Shown here piece by piece: positions 35,931 to 44,910 of a DNA stretch of 64,000 nucleotides. The notes under the pieces are model-generated. The model worked only from the letters and a program-made list of their open reading frames with translations. It had not been told where the DNA came from and ran no database searches. Made by a program: the position numbers and the translations under genes. The DNA comes from Thecamonas trahens ATCC 50062 (taxonomy: Eukaryota; Protista; Apusomonadida), in contig NW_013657676.1 of NCBI RefSeq assembly GCF_000142905.1, positions 310,001 to 374,000 on the forward strand, in the 5' to 3' direction. Positions within the stretch are counted from its first letter, which is position 1. Every line of letters begins with the position of its first letter.

Positions 35931-38900
35931 ATGCCTGCTCGAGGCCGCCCCAGGACTAGGGTCCCCTCGCGGCAGTCGTCACGACGCCGCGAGACTACCC
36001 GAGCCCCACCCTCACGCGCAGGCACAGTGAGCCGGACAAGGAGGACGCCAGACGCAGGTGACTCGCGGAGGGACGACGGCGTGGGCGGAGAGACGCTCGC
36101 AGAGTTTCGGGAAAAGGTCCGCGGCATCGTCTCGGACACCCCGTTTGACGCGGCGACCGACCCGCGCCGCTCGACCGTCGAGCGCGAGCTCAACTGGGAT
36201 GCGACGCCTGCGCGGCCGCCGTCACGCGCCGCGGCGCCGCGGGCTCACTCTGCACTTGATTCGCGACAGGTTACGTCAGTTCGTCGCGGTATCGACCCTC
36301 GCGATGCCGCCCTCATCGACGCCGTCGACGCCGAGGTCAACTCGGTCGTCCGCGGCCGCGGCCCGCTTGCCTCGTTCGACTACGGGTACTCGACCCAAGG
36401 CGGCCAGGCGTCGGTCTCGGCCGCCGCCGCCGCGCGCTCACCAGCCACGCTTATGGCTGCCATTGACAAGCTCTGGTCCGAGCTCCACCTGCCGCCCATC
36501 GAGCGGGCCATGTACGCGGCGTCGTGGTTTGCCACCGTCGAGCCCAACCCCGCTGATGCCGGCGTTCTCCAGCCGCACGCCTGGGACGAAATGATTTCCA
36601 TCTACGACGCGCTTCTCGTCCACCGTAAGCGTACGCTTGCAGTGCTCAAGGCCATCGAGCTCCGCGAGATGGCACTCGATGCCATGGCTTCGCTCCCCGA
36701 GTCTGCCTCCAAGCTTGCTGTCACCACGGCCGCTGACGACTTGCGTATTGCCTCGGTCTCGGTCGTCGAGGCCATTGTAGAGTGGCGCGACGGCCTCTCC
36801 GACGCCTACGGCTTTACCTGGCGCGGCTCAAACTATCTGATCAAGATGCTCGCAGACGCCAACATCCTCGCTAACCTCGGCTTTGAGAGCTACTTCCCGT
36901 TCTCCTTCCGCAACAACCCGCTCCTGCTGGACACTCGCTTCCACTACAAGGAGCCCGAGCTTCGTGGCACCCTTGCCTCGCAGATGTCTGCCGCTGCACA
37001 GTTCAAGATCCTTCTCCGCCGCCGGCAGGAAGAGGCCCACAATCTGCTCCTCGCCGAGGAGCGACGTGCCGCCCGCCTCCATCGCCTCCGTGAGGACCTC
37101 TCGCTCCAGCGCTATCTCGTCCCGATCCTTGCCGTTGGCTCGATCCCCACCGGCCTCCCGGTCTACTTTGATCCGTCCTCGCCCGACGACCCCTTCACGC
37201 CACCCGTTGATTCGGTCTTTCACTACACCTCGGGTGTCGGCGCGCCCTTCGATGACGACACTACCCCGACACATGCCGAGGCCACATCTTCGGCCACCGC
37301 ACTCCACGGCCGCGACTTTGAACCGTACGATGTCGGCTCGAGTGCAGCCGCCCCCGTCCCGGCTCCGCGCTCGGAAGCCGCAACTGGTGCGGGTGCTATT
37401 GCCTCGCGCACCTCGCCACTCGCTTCACCCTCGGTCTCGGCCTCGGCCTCGGCCGCCTCCGCTTCAGCTCCTGCTTCTGCATCTGCATCTGCATCTGCAT
37501 CTGCATCCGCCTCCAACTCGGCCTCGGCCTCGGCCTCGGCTTCCAACTCGGCCTCGGCTTCCAACTCGGCCTCGGCTTCCAACTCGGCCTCGGCCTCTCC
37601 CTCAGCTTCAGCCTCCAACTCAGCCTCAGCCTCGGCCTCCAACTCAGCCTTGGCCTCTCCGTCCGCCTCTCCGTCCGCCTCGGCCTCCGACTCTGGCTCA
37701 GACTCAAGTTCGGACTCGGTCTCGGCCTCTGGTTCTCCATCCCCCGCTCCCGTCCCGGTCCAGGCCGGCCAGTTCAACGAGGTCGAGACCGCGATTGAGG
37801 CGTCGGCCCTCGCGGATGCAGACAAGTTTCGCGCAGACAGCCTCGAGCCCGTCGAGGGCGACGACGTTGCCGAGCCGATGTTCGACTCGGATATGCATCG
37901 TTCAGTCCTTTCGCCCGAGGACTACGACGTGGCGCGGACAGATGCCTTTCTGCGTAAGCACGACGCCCGGTTTGGCGAGCTGCCCCAGGTCGAGCTCGGA
38001 AGCCGGAGGGCACTCGCACTAGCGCTCACGGATGCTGACGGGCGCCCCGCCGGTGAGCTCAACGTCGAGATCGCCTACGACGCCATGCAGGTTAGCCCGG
38101 GCCAACTGCCCGAGTGGCCGCTGCCTGCCGATGCCAAGGACAGTGCGACGCGCTCGATTCACCGCAGTGGCCACGCCAAGGGTAAGTCCGAGTCTGGCTC
38201 GGATCCCAGCCTCGCGGTGGTCGAGGACACACTCCGAGTGGTCATTGTCGGTGCCGCGGGTCTCCACGACGCCCGCGAGGCCTCGGGCGCTGACGCGTAC
38301 GTCAAGCTAGAGCTTGGGTCGTCTGAGATTGTTCGCGGCAAGACCAAGCCGGTGGCCAACTCGGCCGATCCAGTCTTTAACGCCACCTTTGAGTTTGATC
38401 TCCTGGCTGCCGCACGTGAGCTCGGCCTGTCATCGCTCTCCAGAACCCGCGCTCCGCTCAAGTTCTCAGTCTTTGACGCCGACGTCGGCCGCGACGACCT
38501 GCTCGGCTCGGCGCTTGCTGAGCTCTCCAAGCTCGAGCCGAACCAGACCGCCGACCTCTGGCTCGACCTCATTCCGCCAACTGACCACAACGCCAAGGGC
38601 GGTACTGTCCTTGCACTCGCCGTCCACGACGTCAATCGCCTCTCCAAGAACGAGCAGCTTGGCACCGCGCTTGTCCCGCTCTCCACCGGCACCATCCCGG
38701 TCGATGGCACTTCGCGCGACATTGCCGTTGCCCTTGACACACCCGGTGTGCCGCAAACCGTCCACCTCCGCCTCTCGTTCCAGCAGCACGCGCTTGGCGG
38801 CGGCGTGCTCACCAAGACCGACACGCAGGCATCCTCGAGCTCGACGGCGCTCGCGCCTCGGCCGCGGCCTGCAGGCACCCTCCGCGTGGTTGTCGAATCG

Positions 38901-41900
38901 GCCACAAGCCTCGAAGCGAAGGACCGCAAGTCGTCCGACCCGTTCTGTACCGTGAGCGTCGGGGAGATCTCGGCCAAGACCGAAGTCATCAAGTCGACGC
39001 TCGACCCGGTGTGGAACGAGGTCCTCCAGCTTCAGCTCCCTGCCAGCAAAGCCGGCGAAGACGACACCCTTTGCTTTGCTGTCTTTGACTGGGATCGCGC
39101 GTCGGCCAACGATCCGCTCGGCATAGCCAAACTTGCACTCGACACCCTCGCGCTCGATGGCTCAGACAATGCGGTGCTCCTCCCGCTGGTTGGCTCGGCT
39201 TCCGGTGGCTCGGTTACAGCCAAGATCTCGTTTGTGGCCAACGGTAGTGAGTCGGCCAAGGTGGCCAAGTCATCAGCTGAGCCAGGTCGTGCGGCCCGGT
39301 TGTTCCGAGTCGACGTCAAGATCATGGCCGGGCTTGGCCTGGCGCTCGATGACGCCGGTGTGCCCTCTGCGCCGTTTGTTGAGCTGGCCCTCGGCCGGTC
39401 TCGGCATAAGTCGCGGATTCTCAAGGGCTCGGCCACGCCGGACCCGCAGTGGGACGAGCAGTTCTCGCTCATGTGCTCACCCGCCGAGCTCGACGCCGGC
39501 TTTGTGCTCGACGTCTTCAACTGGGATCAGTGGGGTGCCAACAAGCCGCTTGGTCGCGCCACGCTGGCGCTCGTCGACCTCAAGCCTGGCAAGCGAGCGG
39601 TGCGCAAGCTTGCGCTCGATCCGCAGCTTGGCTCGGGCGCGATTCAGATTGCGCTCTCAGTCAACGTCGAGGCCGGTGCGGGCCGCCGTCACTCGGTCCC
39701 GTGCGACGTCGGCATGGCCCCAACCGCCGGCACCCGCACTCGCGCGCTTCACAGCGGTTCCGCCGGTATTGTCGGTGCGCTCAAGGTTGAAGTCCTCTCG
39801 GCCACCAACCTCCGCAACAAGGCCGGCAAGGCGCCAGACGCGCGGGTTTCACTTTCAGTCGGCGCGTCGTTGTTTGAGACTTCCAAGATGTCTAACGCCA
39901 CCGACCCGGTGTGGGGCGGGAGTAAGGCGTCTACTGTGTTTGAGGGCGTCGCACTCGCGGCTGGCAGCGGCATGGCGGGCGATACCGCCGGCGCGCTCCA
40001 TGTCCAACTCACTCGCCACGTGGCGGCGGCAATCGAGGCCGAGACGGCGTCCGACCCGCAGCGCCCGGCCCGCAAGCAGAGTCCTCTGGTAGCGGTTAAG
40101 CTAGTCGAGGCTGAGCAGCTTCCGCAGCGGCATCCTGCCAAGGACATGTTTTTCAACCTCGTGCAGGCGCGGTTCGCGCTCGCTGGGCACGGTCCGGCTG
40201 CTGCTGACGCCCTGGCCAGAGTTGACGCCGAGCTCGGTGAGCGGTACCTGCAGAACGGGGCGGTGCTGCTGGTCGGCATGAACTTTGCCCTGACAACGGC
40301 CAAGTACGGAGTCGACCAGACCATCGCCAACATGCACGCCCTCACCCAGATCCTCTATCCTTTTGTTCTCTCGCTCAACGGGACCATCATCGAGGAGAAC
40401 ATCTTTTTCTTCTCAGATCCGCTTATTGCCGTCTCGGCTGCGCTCGGCGCCAAGGTGCTGCTGGCCCAATACAATGCCGGCCTGGGCAGTGGAGACGAGG
40501 CGGACCGCAAGGCGCTTGTTGTGCGTGGTCTCGGAGTGCACGTCGGCGACATGCTCATTGTGCCCGATACCAACGTCCACTGGGGTGATCCGCTCAACGT
40601 GGCGTCCAAGCTTGCAGAAGACTATGCACAGGACGGACAGTTGTTTGTCACCCGCGAAGTCCACGCTGCGCTCAAGTCGTCAGTCCAGTTTGGTCAGCTT
40701 GTCTTTGAGCCGCACTCGATCATCATCTCCAAGGTCGAACTCACTGCGTACACCGCTGTGGCCAAGGAAGGCACCAAGCTCGCCCGCCCGCCCAGCCTCG
40801 ATGCGGCCCCTCCGCAGAAGCATGGTACCGAGATTCACTGCCTCCGGTATCCTGCTGCCGGTGCCGTGCTTGTCTCGGACATGTCCGGCTTTACGCGCAT
40901 CACCAAGGCGCACGGCATTGTCCATTACGCCTCGCTCATCCTCAAAATGCGACAGGTGTGCTCAGCCATTTACGCTGCCTACGGCGCAAAGCACTTTTTC
41001 ACCGAGGCCGACAACTGCTTTGTCCTCTTTGACTCGGCGTGGAACGCGCTCGAGGCCGCCAAGGTTGCACAGGCCATGATGGCCGCGTACAACGCCAAAG
41101 TTGTTGACCCCAAGTTTACCATCAAGGTCGGTGGCTGGGGCCTCTCCTACGGCGACAACATCCTGCAAGATACCGAGAGCGGCAAGATGTACGGGCAAGC
41201 CGTCGACGAAGCCTTTGAGCTCGGCGAGGACGTGGCCGAAAACAACGTGCTCGCCACTGGCGCCATTCTGGCTGCCATGCGCGCCGAGGGCGGCTCGCTC
41301 GATGGCGTCACCCCCGCTCCAGGCTCACTCGACGAGTGCACCGAGCTCATCAACGAGTACTACGCCATGGACGGCGAGCTTGCTCCCGGCGCGCAGCGGG
41401 TCTTTGTTCCCGAGCCGCCGCCGGTGGCGGTGGCCGAGCTGGACGCCGTCCTTGAGGGCAGTACGGGCAGGCAGCGCACGCCCGGCTCTTACGAGGCTCT
41501 CGTCAAATTCGACGGTCTTGTCCAGCTGCGGTCTCGACACGCGCCTGCATCGACATCGCCGGCCTGGCACGCCGGCGGCTCGCTGGCCAAGCCGCTCGCC
41601 CCAGGCGCGCTGCTCGAGATCGAGGTCCGCGACAACGACATATTCGGCGGTTCAGAGCTGGTCGGCCAGGCCTTTGTCCCACTAGACAAGCTGGAGACCA
41701 ATGTTCGCGCGGACGTGTGGGTCGATCTTGTTGGCGCTGGTGCGTCGGGCGAGACCGGCGCCGCCGGGCGTGTCCACCTCCATCTGGAAATCCTCGATCC
41801 CAGCGCGCCGTCATGGCTCCTGCATGGCCCGCCGCGCGGCGTCATCGAGCTGGCAGTCATCGCCGCCCGTGAGCTCGGTGATCCGGTCGAGGACGTGTTT

Positions 41901-42473
41901 GAACTCGCGCCGGCATGCAACGTCATCTTTGGTGCGTTCAAGGCCTCCACCGGTCCGATTCGGGGCACCGTCAGTCCACAGTGGGAGTACGATACCCAGG
42001 TGGTCGTTACCGGAACTCCGGGAGACGACCCGGCGTCGATCCTGTTCGAGGTCGTCTCTGGTGACCGGGTCCTAGGCTCGACCTCGCTGCCGGTCGAGCT
42101 GCTCCACCCTGGCGTCCCGCTGGATCTCTGGCTCCCGCTCTCGTCTGGGCGCGGGGCCGCCATCCACGTCGTCGCCTGCCTCCAGCACTGTGCAGCGCCG
42201 CCGCACGGTGCGCTGGCACTCACCCTGGTCTCCGCCTCAGGCCTCGCCCACAAGAGCGATGCCTATGTCGTCGCCCGCTGCGGCCACGGCGCCTCCGTCT
42301 CGTCGGCGGTTGCGCCCAAGTCTGCCGATCCCGAGTGGCACCAGAACCTCCAGCCGCTCTACGTCTACGGCCGGGTCGAGGACCTCGAGCTGGTTGTCAT
42401 GGACCAGGACAAGTTTACCAGCGACGACGAGCTTGGTCGTGCCTGTGTCATCGTTCGCGCCCCGAGCCCTTGA
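35931..42473 (+). CDS. 2180-aa protein: helical N-domain, Ser/Ala linker, about 7 C2 domains and two tandem class III nucleotide cyclase domains
   Basis: C2 motifs (DPVFN, DPVWNE, FDWDRASANDPLG, DPQWDE, MDQDKFTSDDELG); cyclase motifs GLGVHVGD...WGDPLNVASKLAED and VSDMSGFT...EADN...GLSYGD. Confidence 0.85.
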   Translation: MPARGRPRTRVPSRQSSRRRETTRAPPSRAGTVSRTRRTPDAGDSRRDDGVGGETLAEFREKVRGIVSDTPFDAATDPRRSTVERELNWDATPARPPSRAAAPRAHSALDSRQVTSVRRGIDPRDAALIDAVDAEVNSVVRGRGPLASFDYGYSTQGGQASVSAAAAARSPATLMAAIDKLWSELHLPPIERAMYAASWFATVEPNPADAGVLQPHAWDEMISIYDALLVHRKRTLAVLKAIELREMALDAMASLPESASKLAVTTAADDLRIASVSVVEAIVEWRDGLSDAYGFTWRGSNYLIKMLADANILANLGFESYFPFSFRNNPLLLDTRFHYKEPELRGTLASQMSAAAQFKILLRRRQEEAHNLLLAEERRAARLHRLREDLSLQRYLVPILAVGSIPTGLPVYFDPSSPDDPFTPPVDSVFHYTSGVGAPFDDDTTPTHAEATSSATALHGRDFEPYDVGSSAAAPVPAPRSEAATGAGAIASRTSPLASPSVSASASAASASAPASASASASASASASNSASASASASNSASASNSASASNSASASPSASASNSASASASNSALASPSASPSASASDSGSDSSSDSVSASGSPSPAPVPVQAGQFNEVETAIEASALADADKFRADSLEPVEGDDVAEPMFDSDMHRSVLSPEDYDVARTDAFLRKHDARFGELPQVELGSRRALALALTDADGRPAGELNVEIAYDAMQVSPGQLPEWPLPADAKDSATRSIHRSGHAKGKSESGSDPSLAVVEDTLRVVIVGAAGLHDAREASGADAYVKLELGSSEIVRGKTKPVANSADPVFNATFEFDLLAAARELGLSSLSRTRAPLKFSVFDADVGRDDLLGSALAELSKLEPNQTADLWLDLIPPTDHNAKGGTVLALAVHDVNRLSKNEQLGTALVPLSTGTIPVDGTSRDIAVALDTPGVPQTVHLRLSFQQHALGGGVLTKTDTQASSSSTALAPRPRPAGTLRVVVESATSLEAKDRKSSDPFCTVSVGEISAKTEVIKSTLDPVWNEVLQLQLPASKAGEDDTLCFAVFDWDRASANDPLGIAKLALDTLALDGSDNAVLLPLVGSASGGSVTAKISFVANGSESAKVAKSSAEPGRAARLFRVDVKIMAGLGLALDDAGVPSAPFVELALGRSRHKSRILKGSATPDPQWDEQFSLMCSPAELDAGFVLDVFNWDQWGANKPLGRATLALVDLKPGKRAVRKLALDPQLGSGAIQIALSVNVEAGAGRRHSVPCDVGMAPTAGTRTRALHSGSAGIVGALKVEVLSATNLRNKAGKAPDARVSLSVGASLFETSKMSNATDPVWGGSKASTVFEGVALAAGSGMAGDTAGALHVQLTRHVAAAIEAETASDPQRPARKQSPLVAVKLVEAEQLPQRHPAKDMFFNLVQARFALAGHGPAAADALARVDAELGERYLQNGAVLLVGMNFALTTAKYGVDQTIANMHALTQILYPFVLSLNGTIIEENIFFFSDPLIAVSAALGAKVLLAQYNAGLGSGDEADRKALVVRGLGVHVGDMLIVPDTNVHWGDPLNVASKLAEDYAQDGQLFVTREVHAALKSSVQFGQLVFEPHSIIISKVELTAYTAVAKEGTKLARPPSLDAAPPQKHGTEIHCLRYPAAGAVLVSDMSGFTRITKAHGIVHYASLILKMRQVCSAIYAAYGAKHFFTEADNCFVLFDSAWNALEAAKVAQAMMAAYNAKVVDPKFTIKVGGWGLSYGDNILQDTESGKMYGQAVDEAFELGEDVAENNVLATGAILAAMRAEGGSLDGVTPAPGSLDECTELINEYYAMDGELAPGAQRVFVPEPPPVAVAELDAVLEGSTGRQRTPGSYEALVKFDGLVQLRSRHAPASTSPAWHAGGSLAKPLAPGALLEIEVRDNDIFGGSELVGQAFVPLDKLETNVRADVWVDLVGAGASGETGAAGRVHLHLEILDPSAPSWLLHGPPRGVIELAVIAARELGDPVEDVFELAPACNVIFGAFKASTGPIRGTVSPQWEYDTQVVVTGTPGDDPASILFEVVSGDRVLGSTSLPVELLHPGVPLDLWLPLSSGRGAAIHVVACLQHCAAPPHGALALTLVSASGLAHKSDAYVVARCGHGASVSSAVAPKSADPEWHQNLQPLYVYGRVEDLELVVMDQDKFTSDDELGRACVIVRAPSP

Positions 42474-42705
42474 GCACCAGCCACTGTCAGACCAACAAAC
42501 GATACCCTGATGTGGAAAGCTGTCCGTCAAGCCGTCCAGACTTGAAGTCGCAGTCTGCCTGAACCTCGCGTATCTCGAGGCAGGAGGCCTCCAGCGGCAG
42601 TGGCGGTTGAATGTTCGTCTTCCACAAACCACACACGCACGGCCAGGAAGGGCAAGCCGTTGTCAGCCACCACATCACACTCCCCTCCCTCTCTCCCTTC
42701 CCCAT

Positions 42706-42707
<2 letters not shown>

Positions 42708-42746
<39 letters not shown>

Positions 42747-42752
42747 CACACA
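42708..42752. repeat. (CA)n microsatellite
   Basis: cacacaca run upstream of the DCX gene. Confidence 0.9.
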
Positions 42753-42823
42753 GGCACAGGCACACACACTACCACACTACCACGCAACCCCCTACATTCC
42801 CTCCCTCCCTTCCTTCCCTCGGC

Positions 42824-44910
42824 ATGTCGAGCGCATTCCGCACACGGGCCTTGCGCTCACGGCTCGCCGAGTGCACCCCAGACCAGCTCCGCGACATCAT
42901 CACACAGGTATGGGGGCAGCAATGGGGGCAGTGGGTGGTTTGGTGGGTGGTTGGATGACTGTTGCAAAGGGGAGAGGGGAGGAGGGGAGGGAGGGCGGGG
43001 GAAGACTCACTGGTGAGGCGGTGGCGCGGTGGTGTTCTGGCGCGGTGGCATTCTGGCGCGGTGGCCGTTCTGGCTGCGTGGGTGTGGCGCAGCTGTGTGA
43101 GAGCCATGGCAACATCCGGTTCGAGACCAATGTGATTCTGGATGAGATGCTGCAGCCCAAGACACGGACGCCTGCGCGGGCGCGGGCGCATGCCAAGTCG
43201 GCACTGGCCATGCGGTCAACCATGGGAGGCGAGTCGCCGTCGCCGGGAGGACGGTCGCGGTCAAAGTCGCCGTCGCATCTTAAGTCGGTCATGATGCAGC
43301 CGTCACTCTTCACCCGGCTCCCGCCCAAGGCTGCGCGGGTGAGAGTCTTCCGCAACGGATCAAACAACGAGTTTGAGATGGCGACGGTGGCGGCGTCGTC
43401 GATGGACGAGTTTCTGCGGCTGGCAACGGACAAACTCGGCCTGGTGGCTGCGGCCCGCAAGGTGTACGACGTAGAGGGCAACACAGTGACCACGCTCGAT
43501 GGGCTGGAGAACGATGCAGTGGTGTATGTCTCGGCGGGCGAGGCGTTCCAGGACCCGATGCGGCACGGCCCGCGGGTGACGACGTCGTCGATCGGCGCAG
43601 ACCACCGGCTGGTGCGGCAGACGACCAAGCGGCTGTACGCCAAGAAGAATGGCGACCCGTCCGACGATCGGTTCATCATTGTGGCGCCGCTGCCGGGCCT
43701 CTACACACCGGCGCAGGAGATGGAGATGCTGCTTACCGACTGCACGGCCAAGCTTAACCTGGTGGCGTGCGCCAAGCGGGTATTTACCGAAGAGGGCAAG
43801 CTTGTTGAGTCGGTGGCAGAACTGGCCAACGGACAGACCATTGTGGTCTCTGTTGGCGAGCCGTGGCACGATCCGGCCGACAAGTCGCCGATCAAGCGCG
43901 GGGTTAAGATTGCCGATGACCACCGGCTGCTTCAGGAGCCGGCAAAGGCCATCCGGGCGCTGCGCAACGGGCACAAGTCGCTCTCGCGGCAAGCAACGCT
44001 AGAGAAGCAGCTGGATGTCTTCCGCGGCGAGTCGGTTCTTGTGGTGGGAAACACTATGGAAAAGCTGCTAGAGTCGGCGACAACGCGGCTCTCCCTGACG
44101 TCTGCGGCGCGGCGGCTGTACACAGTGACTGGCGAGCTTGTCCATGAGTTTGACCGCTTTGAGCGCGGCCAGCTGTACTACGTCTCTGTGGGCGAGGGCT
44201 TTATTGATCCGATGGACCCGACGCAGCTGGCGGCCAAGCAGATTGCCGAGCTTCCGGCCTCATCGCACCTCAATCCCCCGCCGACAGCGCGGATGCTCGC
44301 CTTTCGCAACGGCGAGTCGGCCATCCGCGACGCGGTCCGAGTGGTGGCCTCGTCAATGCGGCAGGTGCTCGAAGAGTGCACCCGCAAGCTGCATCTTGTT
44401 GCGTCTGCGCGGCGGCTGTACACCACGTCCGGCGTGCCCATCAACTCGCTCAAGGACATCACCAACGACATGCACGTGGTTGTCTCGTGCGGCGAACCAT
44501 TTAAGCCGCTCGACGGCTCGCGTGTCGAGTCGCTCATTGCCCCCATCTCAGAGGGCTCGCGTCTACTGGTCAAAGGCAACATTCGGCTCAACGCCCACCG
44601 CAACGGGTGGGGCTCGCGGCAAGCCGGCCGCCACATCGTGGGCGCATCGCTCAAGGAGCTCCTCGACGAGGCGACTCGTGTCCTGGGCCTGCCGTCAGCA
44701 GCACGCCGCATGTACACCGAGGATGGCGTCCACATCAAGGATGTGAACCAGCTCTCGCGCGACATGACCGTCTACATCTCGCTCGGAGAGCAGTTTTCGT
44801 CGAGTGCGGCTCGCAGCGGTGCCGGCGGAGCTGGTGCCTCGTCGGCTGGCAGCCGTCGCAAGGGCGCCAAAGTCGGCTCCAAAACAGCAAGCACAGGCAC
44901 GTCGACGTAA
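42824..44910 (+). CDS. Doublecortin-domain protein with five DCX repeats (DCDC1/DCDC5-like); intron 42908-43092
   Basis: Exon 1 MSSAFRT...DIITQ splices in frame (GTATG...GCAG) to LCESHGN. Five repeats of [RK]NG...[AC]T.[KR]L.L...A[RK][RK].[YF]...G...VS.GE.[FW]. Confidence 0.85.

Follow-up and report, generated by a model that had tools for sequence, protein, structure and literature searches.

The mammalian membrane adenylyl cyclases (ACs) AC9, AC5 and AC8 hold their catalytic domains as an intramolecular pseudo-heterodimer with one live and one dead site, the metal Asp pair coming from one half and the Asn/basic pair from the other, and the soluble AC ADCY10 (sAC; 4clf, 4cm0) carries tandem catalytic domains in one chain, the metal-binding half first, together with a STAND/TPR tail; sAC responds to bicarbonate and Ca2+ directly and not via C2 domains. 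The stand-alone or class IIIc-like bacterial cyclases of Ruegeria pomeroyi (3mr7), Mycobacterium avium (Ma1120) and M. tuberculosis (Rv1900c) are homodimers in which all residues, the Arg included, lie in one chain. A further arrangement is that of the P4-ATPase-guanylyl cyclases of alveolates and stramenopiles, giant membrane proteins with a flippase domain, many transmembrane (TM) helices and canonical PF00211 domains, whose tandem cyclase domains stand in reversed order relative to mammalian ACs. Here, we analyze a stretch of 64,000 nucleotides from Thecamonas trahens ATCC 50062 (assembly GCF_000142905.1, contig NW_013657676.1, positions 310,001 to 374,000; hereafter the window, with positions counted from its first letter), in which one gene encodes a protein with a core of two class III cyclase-homology domains, A and B, inside a run of C2 modules. 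This fusion of C2 modules with a live-looking split-site pair is a variant of the class III cyclase pseudo-heterodimer.

The core resembles each of these systems in part. AC9, AC5 and AC8 are its best structural matches (Z scores of 22-24), but it lacks their TM domains, its domain order is reversed, a Lys replaces the Arg and identity is about 10-12%; the duplication behind it is probably independent of the mammalian one, because bacterial single-domain forms occur in the same subfamily. ADCY10 (Z 20-21 over ~330 residues) is soluble like the core, but the window protein has no such tail, and membership in an ADCY10-like group was rejected on the order A then B and on E values of 0.017-0.027 for sAC as against 1e-18 to 1e-23 for 3mr7 and Ma1120. 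These two and Rv1900c are, among solved structures, closest in sequence to both halves, which, unlike the homodimers, are specialized and fused. An alveolate-type P4-ATPase-guanylyl cyclase was also rejected, as the protein has neither a P4-ATPase match in Pfam nor a TM-like window; it has C2 modules instead, and its cyclase domains belong to a divergent subfamily. The Pseudomonas aeruginosa structure 6yii likewise has two cyclase-fold domains in one chain; it was deposited as an ATP-binding protein/transcriptional regulator, and for its catalytic status we rely on the title alone. Three paralogues in the same genome (C43, C9 and C36) share the Lys-variant subfamily and the split site, but none has the core inside a run of 7-8 C2 modules. 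The papers searched contained neither a C2-plus-cyclase layout, in agreement with an earlier note on this DNA that had not recognized the architecture as described, nor a cyclase of this type from Thecamonas or other apusomonads.

The cyclase core and its complementary half-sites

The gene and the parts of its core are as follows.

35931 to 42473, forward strand: whole gene, an open reading frame (ORF) of 2,180 codons from the first ATG to a TGA, stop-free between
40125 to 40763, forward strand: cyclase-homology domain A, residues 1399-1611, with two N-terminal helices (profile, AlphaFold model, residue alignment)
40392 to 40394, forward strand: codon of Glu1488, at the adenine-specifying Lys position (K101 of Ma1120)
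40596 to 40610, forward strand: Asn1556-Lys1560 (N-V-A-S-K), the transition-state pair, with Lys for the usual Arg
40764 to 40838, forward strand: A-B linker, residues 1612-1636, where model confidence is low
40839 to 41315, forward strand: cyclase-homology domain B, residues 1637-1795 (profile, AlphaFold model, residue alignment)

The core spans 400 residues and is central in the protein. The earlier note, made from the sequence alone, had proposed two class III cyclase domains here, and its motifs lie where it placed them (LVGMNF, 40269-40286; WGDPLNVASK, 40581-40610; SDMSGFT, 40875-40895; EADN, 41004-41015; GQAVDEAFE, 41193-41219). Standard searches scarcely detect them. In Pfam, PF00211 had no match in the full protein at E<=1 and none in half B alone, and half A alone scored 14.4 bits (E 0.029), below the gathering threshold of 21.9 bits. 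A phmmer search of the Protein Data Bank (PDB) with the core returned only 3mr7 (E 1e-4), and NCBIfam and a word-indexed protein search with the single core sequence returned almost nothing. The family was revealed only when 1.84 billion representatives were searched exhaustively with HMMER, which gave 780 relatives at E<=1e-3, 327 of them at E<=1e-10.

An alignment of the window core with 21 of these relatives (A1), in which none of the 10 invariant and 14 near-invariant columns is changed in the core, was the basis of both a profile and an AlphaFold2 model. Against solved chains, the profile matched half A to 3mr7 (E 3e-23) and half B to Ma1120 (E 5e-18), followed by Rv1900c (E 1e-7), then photoactivated cyclases, Cya, soluble guanylyl cyclase, AC9 and sAC; 50 cyclase chains matched besides 3mr7 and Ma1120. 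By this family profile, and only by it, both halves are homologous to class III cyclases far beyond chance; their single-sequence matches are marginal.

The AlphaFold2 model of A1 (predicted local distance difference test, pLDDT, 86.5; predicted template modelling score, pTM, 0.85) agrees with the profile. The whole two-domain model superposes on AC9 (6r3q; Z 24.3 over 334 residues, 3.8 A), AC5 (8sl4; Z 23.8), 6yii (Z 22.4 over 352 residues; A1 profile E 0.001), AC8 (8bv5; Z 22.1) and human sAC (Z 20.9 over 327 residues, 3.3 A), and single domains superpose on bacterial cyclases of the 3mr7/Ma1120/Rv1900c class with a Z of about 20 at 2.3-2.7 A. Since both domains together superpose on the AC9, AC5, AC8 and sAC cores, the pair models as a class III head-to-tail pseudo-heterodimer, the point at which, by the earlier note, the proposal might have failed. 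We regard the predicted fold and pseudo-dimer as very probable.

In the aligned residues, half A has Gly1449 at the first metal position and a shortened hairpin that lacks the second metal Asp. The earlier note was thus right that half A lacks the metal Asp residues, but the transition-state motif that it saw as kept is non-canonical, with Lys1560 for Arg. Half B, also as that note had it, keeps both metal ligands, Asp1650 and Asp1694, together with the family-invariant Arg1674, and has Asp and Glu at the Asn and Lys positions. This complementarity extends over the whole family. Among 303 family domains, aligned to a profile built from the single-domain bacterial members, 124 carry only the Asp pair, 122 only the Asn and a basic residue, 22 both and 35 neither; the 22 domains with the full set are ~200-residue bacterial-type single-domain proteins. 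At the transition-state Arg position, the family has Lys in 143 domains and Arg in 1. Column conservation follows the same division: B-type domains conserve N-terminal motifs (D, SGFT, GI.H, R, EADN), A-type domains conserve C-terminal motifs (GDPVN.ASKLGED and a distal Ser), and single-domain forms conserve both sets. The positions of Asp1650 and Asp1694 are 100% conserved in bacterial single-domain forms and in B-type domains, the latter being defined as a class by carrying both.

Such complementary conservation of A and B is what selection on one composite site would be expected to leave. As read from the alignment, it bears the signature of subfunctionalization around a single composite active site, which is our chief argument, though an indirect one, for catalysis. 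Together, the core and its bacterial relatives may represent an independent case of the evolution of a homodimeric cyclase into a split-site pseudo-heterodimer.

The C2 modules and a proposed membrane recruitment

The C2 model PF00168 matches the protein above the Pfam threshold in 7 stretches (E 1.7e-78, 259.9 bits), close to the earlier note's count of about seven modules, and Pfam matched no domain other than C2 in the full 2,180-residue protein. An iterative self-search separates 8 C2 segments, 5 full and 3 partial; the Ca2+ ligands were judged by eye against the aligned copies.

38226 to 38537, forward strand: C2-1, full, residues 766-869, with five of five canonical Ca2+-ligand Asp positions filled
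38547 to 38696, forward strand: partial C2, C-terminal half only, residues 873-922 (iterative self-search)
38874 to 39155, forward strand: C2-3, full, residues 982-1075, the best Pfam C2 match
39306 to 39584, forward strand: C2-4, full, residues 1126-1218, Ca2+ ligands mostly lost
39774 to 39962, forward strand: C2-like N-terminal part, residues 1282-1344, C2 profile columns 1-50, immediately 5' of the cyclase core
41460 to 41699, forward strand: C2-like C-terminal part, residues 1844-1923, C2 profile columns 35-101, immediately 3' of the core
41838 to 42107, forward strand: C2-7, full, residues 1970-2059, Ca2+ ligands lost
42207 to 42461, forward strand: C2-8, full, residues 2093-2177, four of five Ca2+-ligand positions filled, running to the stop codon

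The C2 motifs quoted by the earlier note are correctly placed (KDRKSSDPF, 38919-38945; FDWDRASAND, 39084-39113; SDAY, 42255-42266; MDQDKFTSDD, 42399-42428), and its statement that some modules have Ca2+-ligand Asp residues agrees with our reading: ligands occupy all five positions in C2-1 and in C2-3 (DRKSSD and DWDRASAND) and four in C2-8, and are lost in the other segments. The two C2-like parts that flank the core, which might be pieces of one C2 domain interrupted by it, overlap in profile columns 35-50, so that each has its own DPxW-type motif, and in an AlphaFold model of residues 1270-1930 both fall below a pLDDT of 50. The partial copy at residues 873-922, directly after C2-1 and without an N-terminal half, looks like a module that was duplicated only in part or has decayed. 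No C2-like sequence is present 3' of 42473 in any frame, which rules out that the last C2 module continues past the stop codon.

The start at 38226 given by the earlier note is that of the first C2 domain; the gene itself begins 2.3 kb upstream, and an in-frame stop lies just 5' of the first ATG. That note's claim that there is no TM segment holds in a simple test with 19-residue windows, in which Kyte-Doolittle hydropathy peaks at 1.57, within the cyclase fold, and no window reaches 1.6. The product is best explained as a soluble protein of about 230 kDa. We propose that, upon a rise in Ca2+, C2-1, C2-3 and perhaps C2-8 would attach to acidic phospholipid and carry the core to a membrane; such recruitment appears evenly poised between holding and failing.

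Possible activity and substrate, and alternative explanations

The explanation that we consider best, and in which we place no more and no less than even confidence, is a composite-site cyclase core recruited by C2 domains. The core would fold as an intramolecular pseudo-heterodimer with one composite active site, to which half B would give Asp1650 and Asp1694 for the metals and half A would give Asn1556 and Lys1560 for the ribose and transition state, together with the base residues Glu1488 and Asn1548 or Val1549. At the membrane, this single site would cyclize a nucleoside triphosphate (NTP). The second, pseudo-symmetric pocket lacks all catalytic residues, and we speculate that, like its counterpart in animal ACs and sAC, it may have a regulatory role. 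For catalysis by the core taken separately, the conserved residues tilt the balance modestly in favor. If active, the protein would be a soluble cyclase that is brought to membranes by C2 domains and would link Ca2+ and lipid directly to a cyclic nucleotide; this link would be built unlike that of the calmodulin-regulated animal enzymes, and in an organism whose lineage is the sister of animals and fungi.

Several observations weigh against this explanation. PMC4215837 describes the Asn and Arg as strongly conserved among class III cyclases, and here Lys replaces the Arg. PF00211 stays below threshold for the core, 6yii, a structurally equivalent tandem, is titled an ATP-binding protein and not a cyclase, and the base-recognition residues fit neither the Lys/Asp rule of ACs nor the Glu/Cys-type rule of guanylyl cyclases (GCs). 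The Ca2+-ligand assignment in the C2 modules is a reading by eye, and the RNA runs searched gave no support for expression. The papers searched held no characterized enzyme from the Lys-variant subfamily, and we know of none.

Of the alternatives, the one that survives best, though we think it unlikely, is a pseudo-cyclase, namely a non-catalytic ATP/GTP-binding sensor or scaffold in a multi-C2 membrane-tethering protein. The replacement of the catalytic Arg by Lys and of the base Lys by Glu would suit such a protein, as would the failure of the Pfam cyclase model, the title of 6yii ("adenylyl cyclase-like ATP-binding protein") and the full degeneration of 35 of the 303 family domains. However, both metal Asp residues, the Asn and the Lys are strictly complementary over hundreds of sequences and occur together in the bacterial single-domain forms, and conservation that is kept both in pairs and in single-domain forms is hard to explain without catalysis. 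Moreover, Ma1120 is active with Ala at the Asn position (PMC4215837), so deviations from the catalytic consensus are tolerated.

The substrate of a composite-site cyclase is less easily read. A-type domains fall into two classes. Class 1, which includes the bacterial forms, has an adenine-type pair (Lys in 34 of 47 domains, Asp in 32 of 47). Class 2 comprises 76 domains including that of the window, with the motif [TS][DN][VI]HWG; 71 of the 76 have no Lys in the beta2-beta3 hairpin, and 65 have Glu there. The corresponding window residues are Glu1488 and Asn1548-Val1549. The earlier note had taken the base-specifying residue to be the Val that precedes WG, and Val1549 is indeed indicated by its fixed spacing from the Gly, but Asn1548 is an equally good candidate: the extra His in the class 2 motif makes the second base position ambiguous, and the conserved Asp/Asn that stands two positions ahead of this His is Asn1548. 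A single K101E exchange in Ma1120 leaves hardly any AC activity at pH 7.5 and gives about four times the GC activity (PMC4215837), and in this light Glu1488 leans toward GTP over ATP. The earlier note's view that the substrate is unclear therefore stands, as the base pair matches neither rule, and we add a slight preference: the product would most likely be a 3',5'-cyclic nucleotide, with GTP weakly favored over ATP as its precursor.

These same base residues, together with the family-wide Lys for Arg, could also point to an active cyclase-fold enzyme with a non-standard substrate or product, for example one that makes a pyrimidine cyclic nucleotide or catalyzes some other nucleotidyl transfer. 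Weak matches to PycC models (E 5.7e-6) lend it something, but they are no stronger than general class III similarity; a bacterial relative lies in an ordinary bacterial context, with an ECF sigma factor, a beta-lactamase-family protein and DUF4377 as neighbors and no Pycsar-type effector; and the effectors in Thecamonas are ordinary cyclic nucleoside monophosphate (cNMP)-binding and phosphodiesterase domains. We consider this improbable, more so than the pseudo-cyclase. Membership of the core in Pycsar PycC as such was rejected, since the matches are partial (24 bits) and no effector stands beside the bacterial relative. For the composite-site cyclase, the genome of Thecamonas (28.7 Mb in 131 contigs, searched for paralogues and cyclic-nucleotide genes) offers a full setting: with more than 60 cNMP-binding and about 14 PDEase_I matches, beside about 50 canonical PF00211 matches, a cyclic-nucleotide product would meet many readers and erasers.

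Three RNA runs hold 6% of the sampled words of the window DNA. The runs that hold it strongly are of unknown kind and genomic-looking, with low-depth contigs; they are uninformative on RNA because these contigs are colinear with the DNA, some of them into intergenic DNA just past the stop. The contigs of four runs, probably source-sample runs, extend colinearly from C2-4 through the core into C2-7 (for example, 39244-42155). An artefact is very improbable, whether an ORF open by chance, a pseudogene or a C2 gene joined to a cyclase gene in the assembly: the little that the RNA runs hold and a low-complexity start would allow it, but 2,180 codons are stop-free, all family-invariant residues are intact and the four-run contigs cross the C2-core-C2 junctions.

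The family and the surroundings of the gene

The core is not unique: it belongs to a large subfamily, as yet without a name, of which the same genome has about ten loci (C43, C31, C36, C18, C16, C11, C19 and C9 among them). Nor does the inverted order distinguish it: among the best 150 relatives, the order B-A occurs in 81 and A-B in 22, and long alternating arrays such as B-A-B-A-B-A occur too, so the A-B order is one register of a repeating unit. In a FastTree phylogeny of 240 family domains, A and B types cluster apart, partly in a circular manner because the catalytic columns were kept, and the nearest neighbors of both window halves are paralogues from their own genome. The halves of the 587-residue B-A protein at C36 are among these nearest kin. 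The paralogue at C16 is AMSG_03955, aligned end to end at 98% identity, and that at C18 also has IQ motifs. At C43 (273000-292000), two adjacent ORFs of 3,130 and 2,161 residues, with short ORFs between them, hold at least 14 alternating B/A cyclase-homology domains. A 3,056-residue ORF at C9 (415000-431000) has IQ motifs, two stretches of C2 and cyclase-homology domains, mostly degenerate, in the order A-B-A; this is the only other combination of C2 with a cyclase pair seen in the genome, and its C2 stretches lie far upstream of those domains.

Outside Thecamonas, the family has members in Amoebozoa (Rhizamoeba, Phalansterium), in Rhodelphis and in marine metatranscriptomes, and Ca2+-linked modules (C2, IQ, EF-hand) recur in the family's fusions. 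It is a tentative and rather doubtful suggestion that the Lys-variant subfamily, with its eukaryotic class marked by [TS][DN][VI]HWG and the hairpin Glu, is a functionally distinct cyclase branch that may prefer a substrate of its own (GTP or a non-canonical NTP) and is repeatedly wired to Ca2+ sensors across protists; if so, the window protein would be an undescribed Ca2+- and membrane-gated source of a second messenger.

At least 588 bacterial species genomes encode a single-domain form of ~200 residues with N.ASKLGED; they span Anaerolineae, Gammaproteobacteria, Polyangia, Treponema and Verrucomicrobiales, among others, and include Paraglaciecola hydrolytica S66 and Arenimonas oryziterrae DSM 21050. 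NCBIfam has no model for these forms. They carry all residues in one chain, which bears out the earlier note's impression that the motif style recalls stand-alone bacterial cyclases, and their occurrence supports its idea of an origin from a duplicated bacterial-type gene. Two metagenome contigs contain such forms (L025, 5001-5630; L026, 1896-2525), each followed by a DUF4377 gene. With its 780 clusters and these bacterial genomes, the family has been overlooked by standard annotation, and it has systematically exchanged Arg for Lys at a near-invariant residue.

Many small eukaryotic members (P0058, P0097, P0092, P0115, P0138, P0110, P0123 and others; A1) begin with MGC, MGN or MGQ, which looks like N-myristoylation/palmitoylation and may thus provide a second membrane route in the family. 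Cyclase pairs elsewhere are fused with a ZMIZ-type SP-RING (P0031) or with a CFAP97 ciliary domain and IQ (P0061).

The part of the window protein ahead of its C2 modules has two further features.

36378 to 37190, forward strand: helical N-terminal region, residues 150-420, with a weak lead from the protein Atlas, to MAP65/Ase1-type modules only
37410 to 37775, forward strand: Ser/Ala/Asn low-complexity repeat (SASASN-type), residues ~495-614

The first ~150 residues are of low complexity, and the true start may be further downstream. Residues 150-420 resemble MAP65_ASE1-type clusters in the protein Atlas (score 0.93 with 189/256 features, of low recognition value) and had no match in Pfam and PDB sequence searches; if the resemblance is real, the protein could be microtubule-associated. 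The sole matches of the repeat at residues ~495-614 are staphylococcal SD-repeat adhesin models, far below threshold. The genes around the ORF, which encode a five-DCX protein, exportin-7, PAN3, hyccin and Piezo, mark the window as eukaryotic. The next gene downstream (42607-44910) encodes a compact protein with about five doublecortin (DCX) domains.

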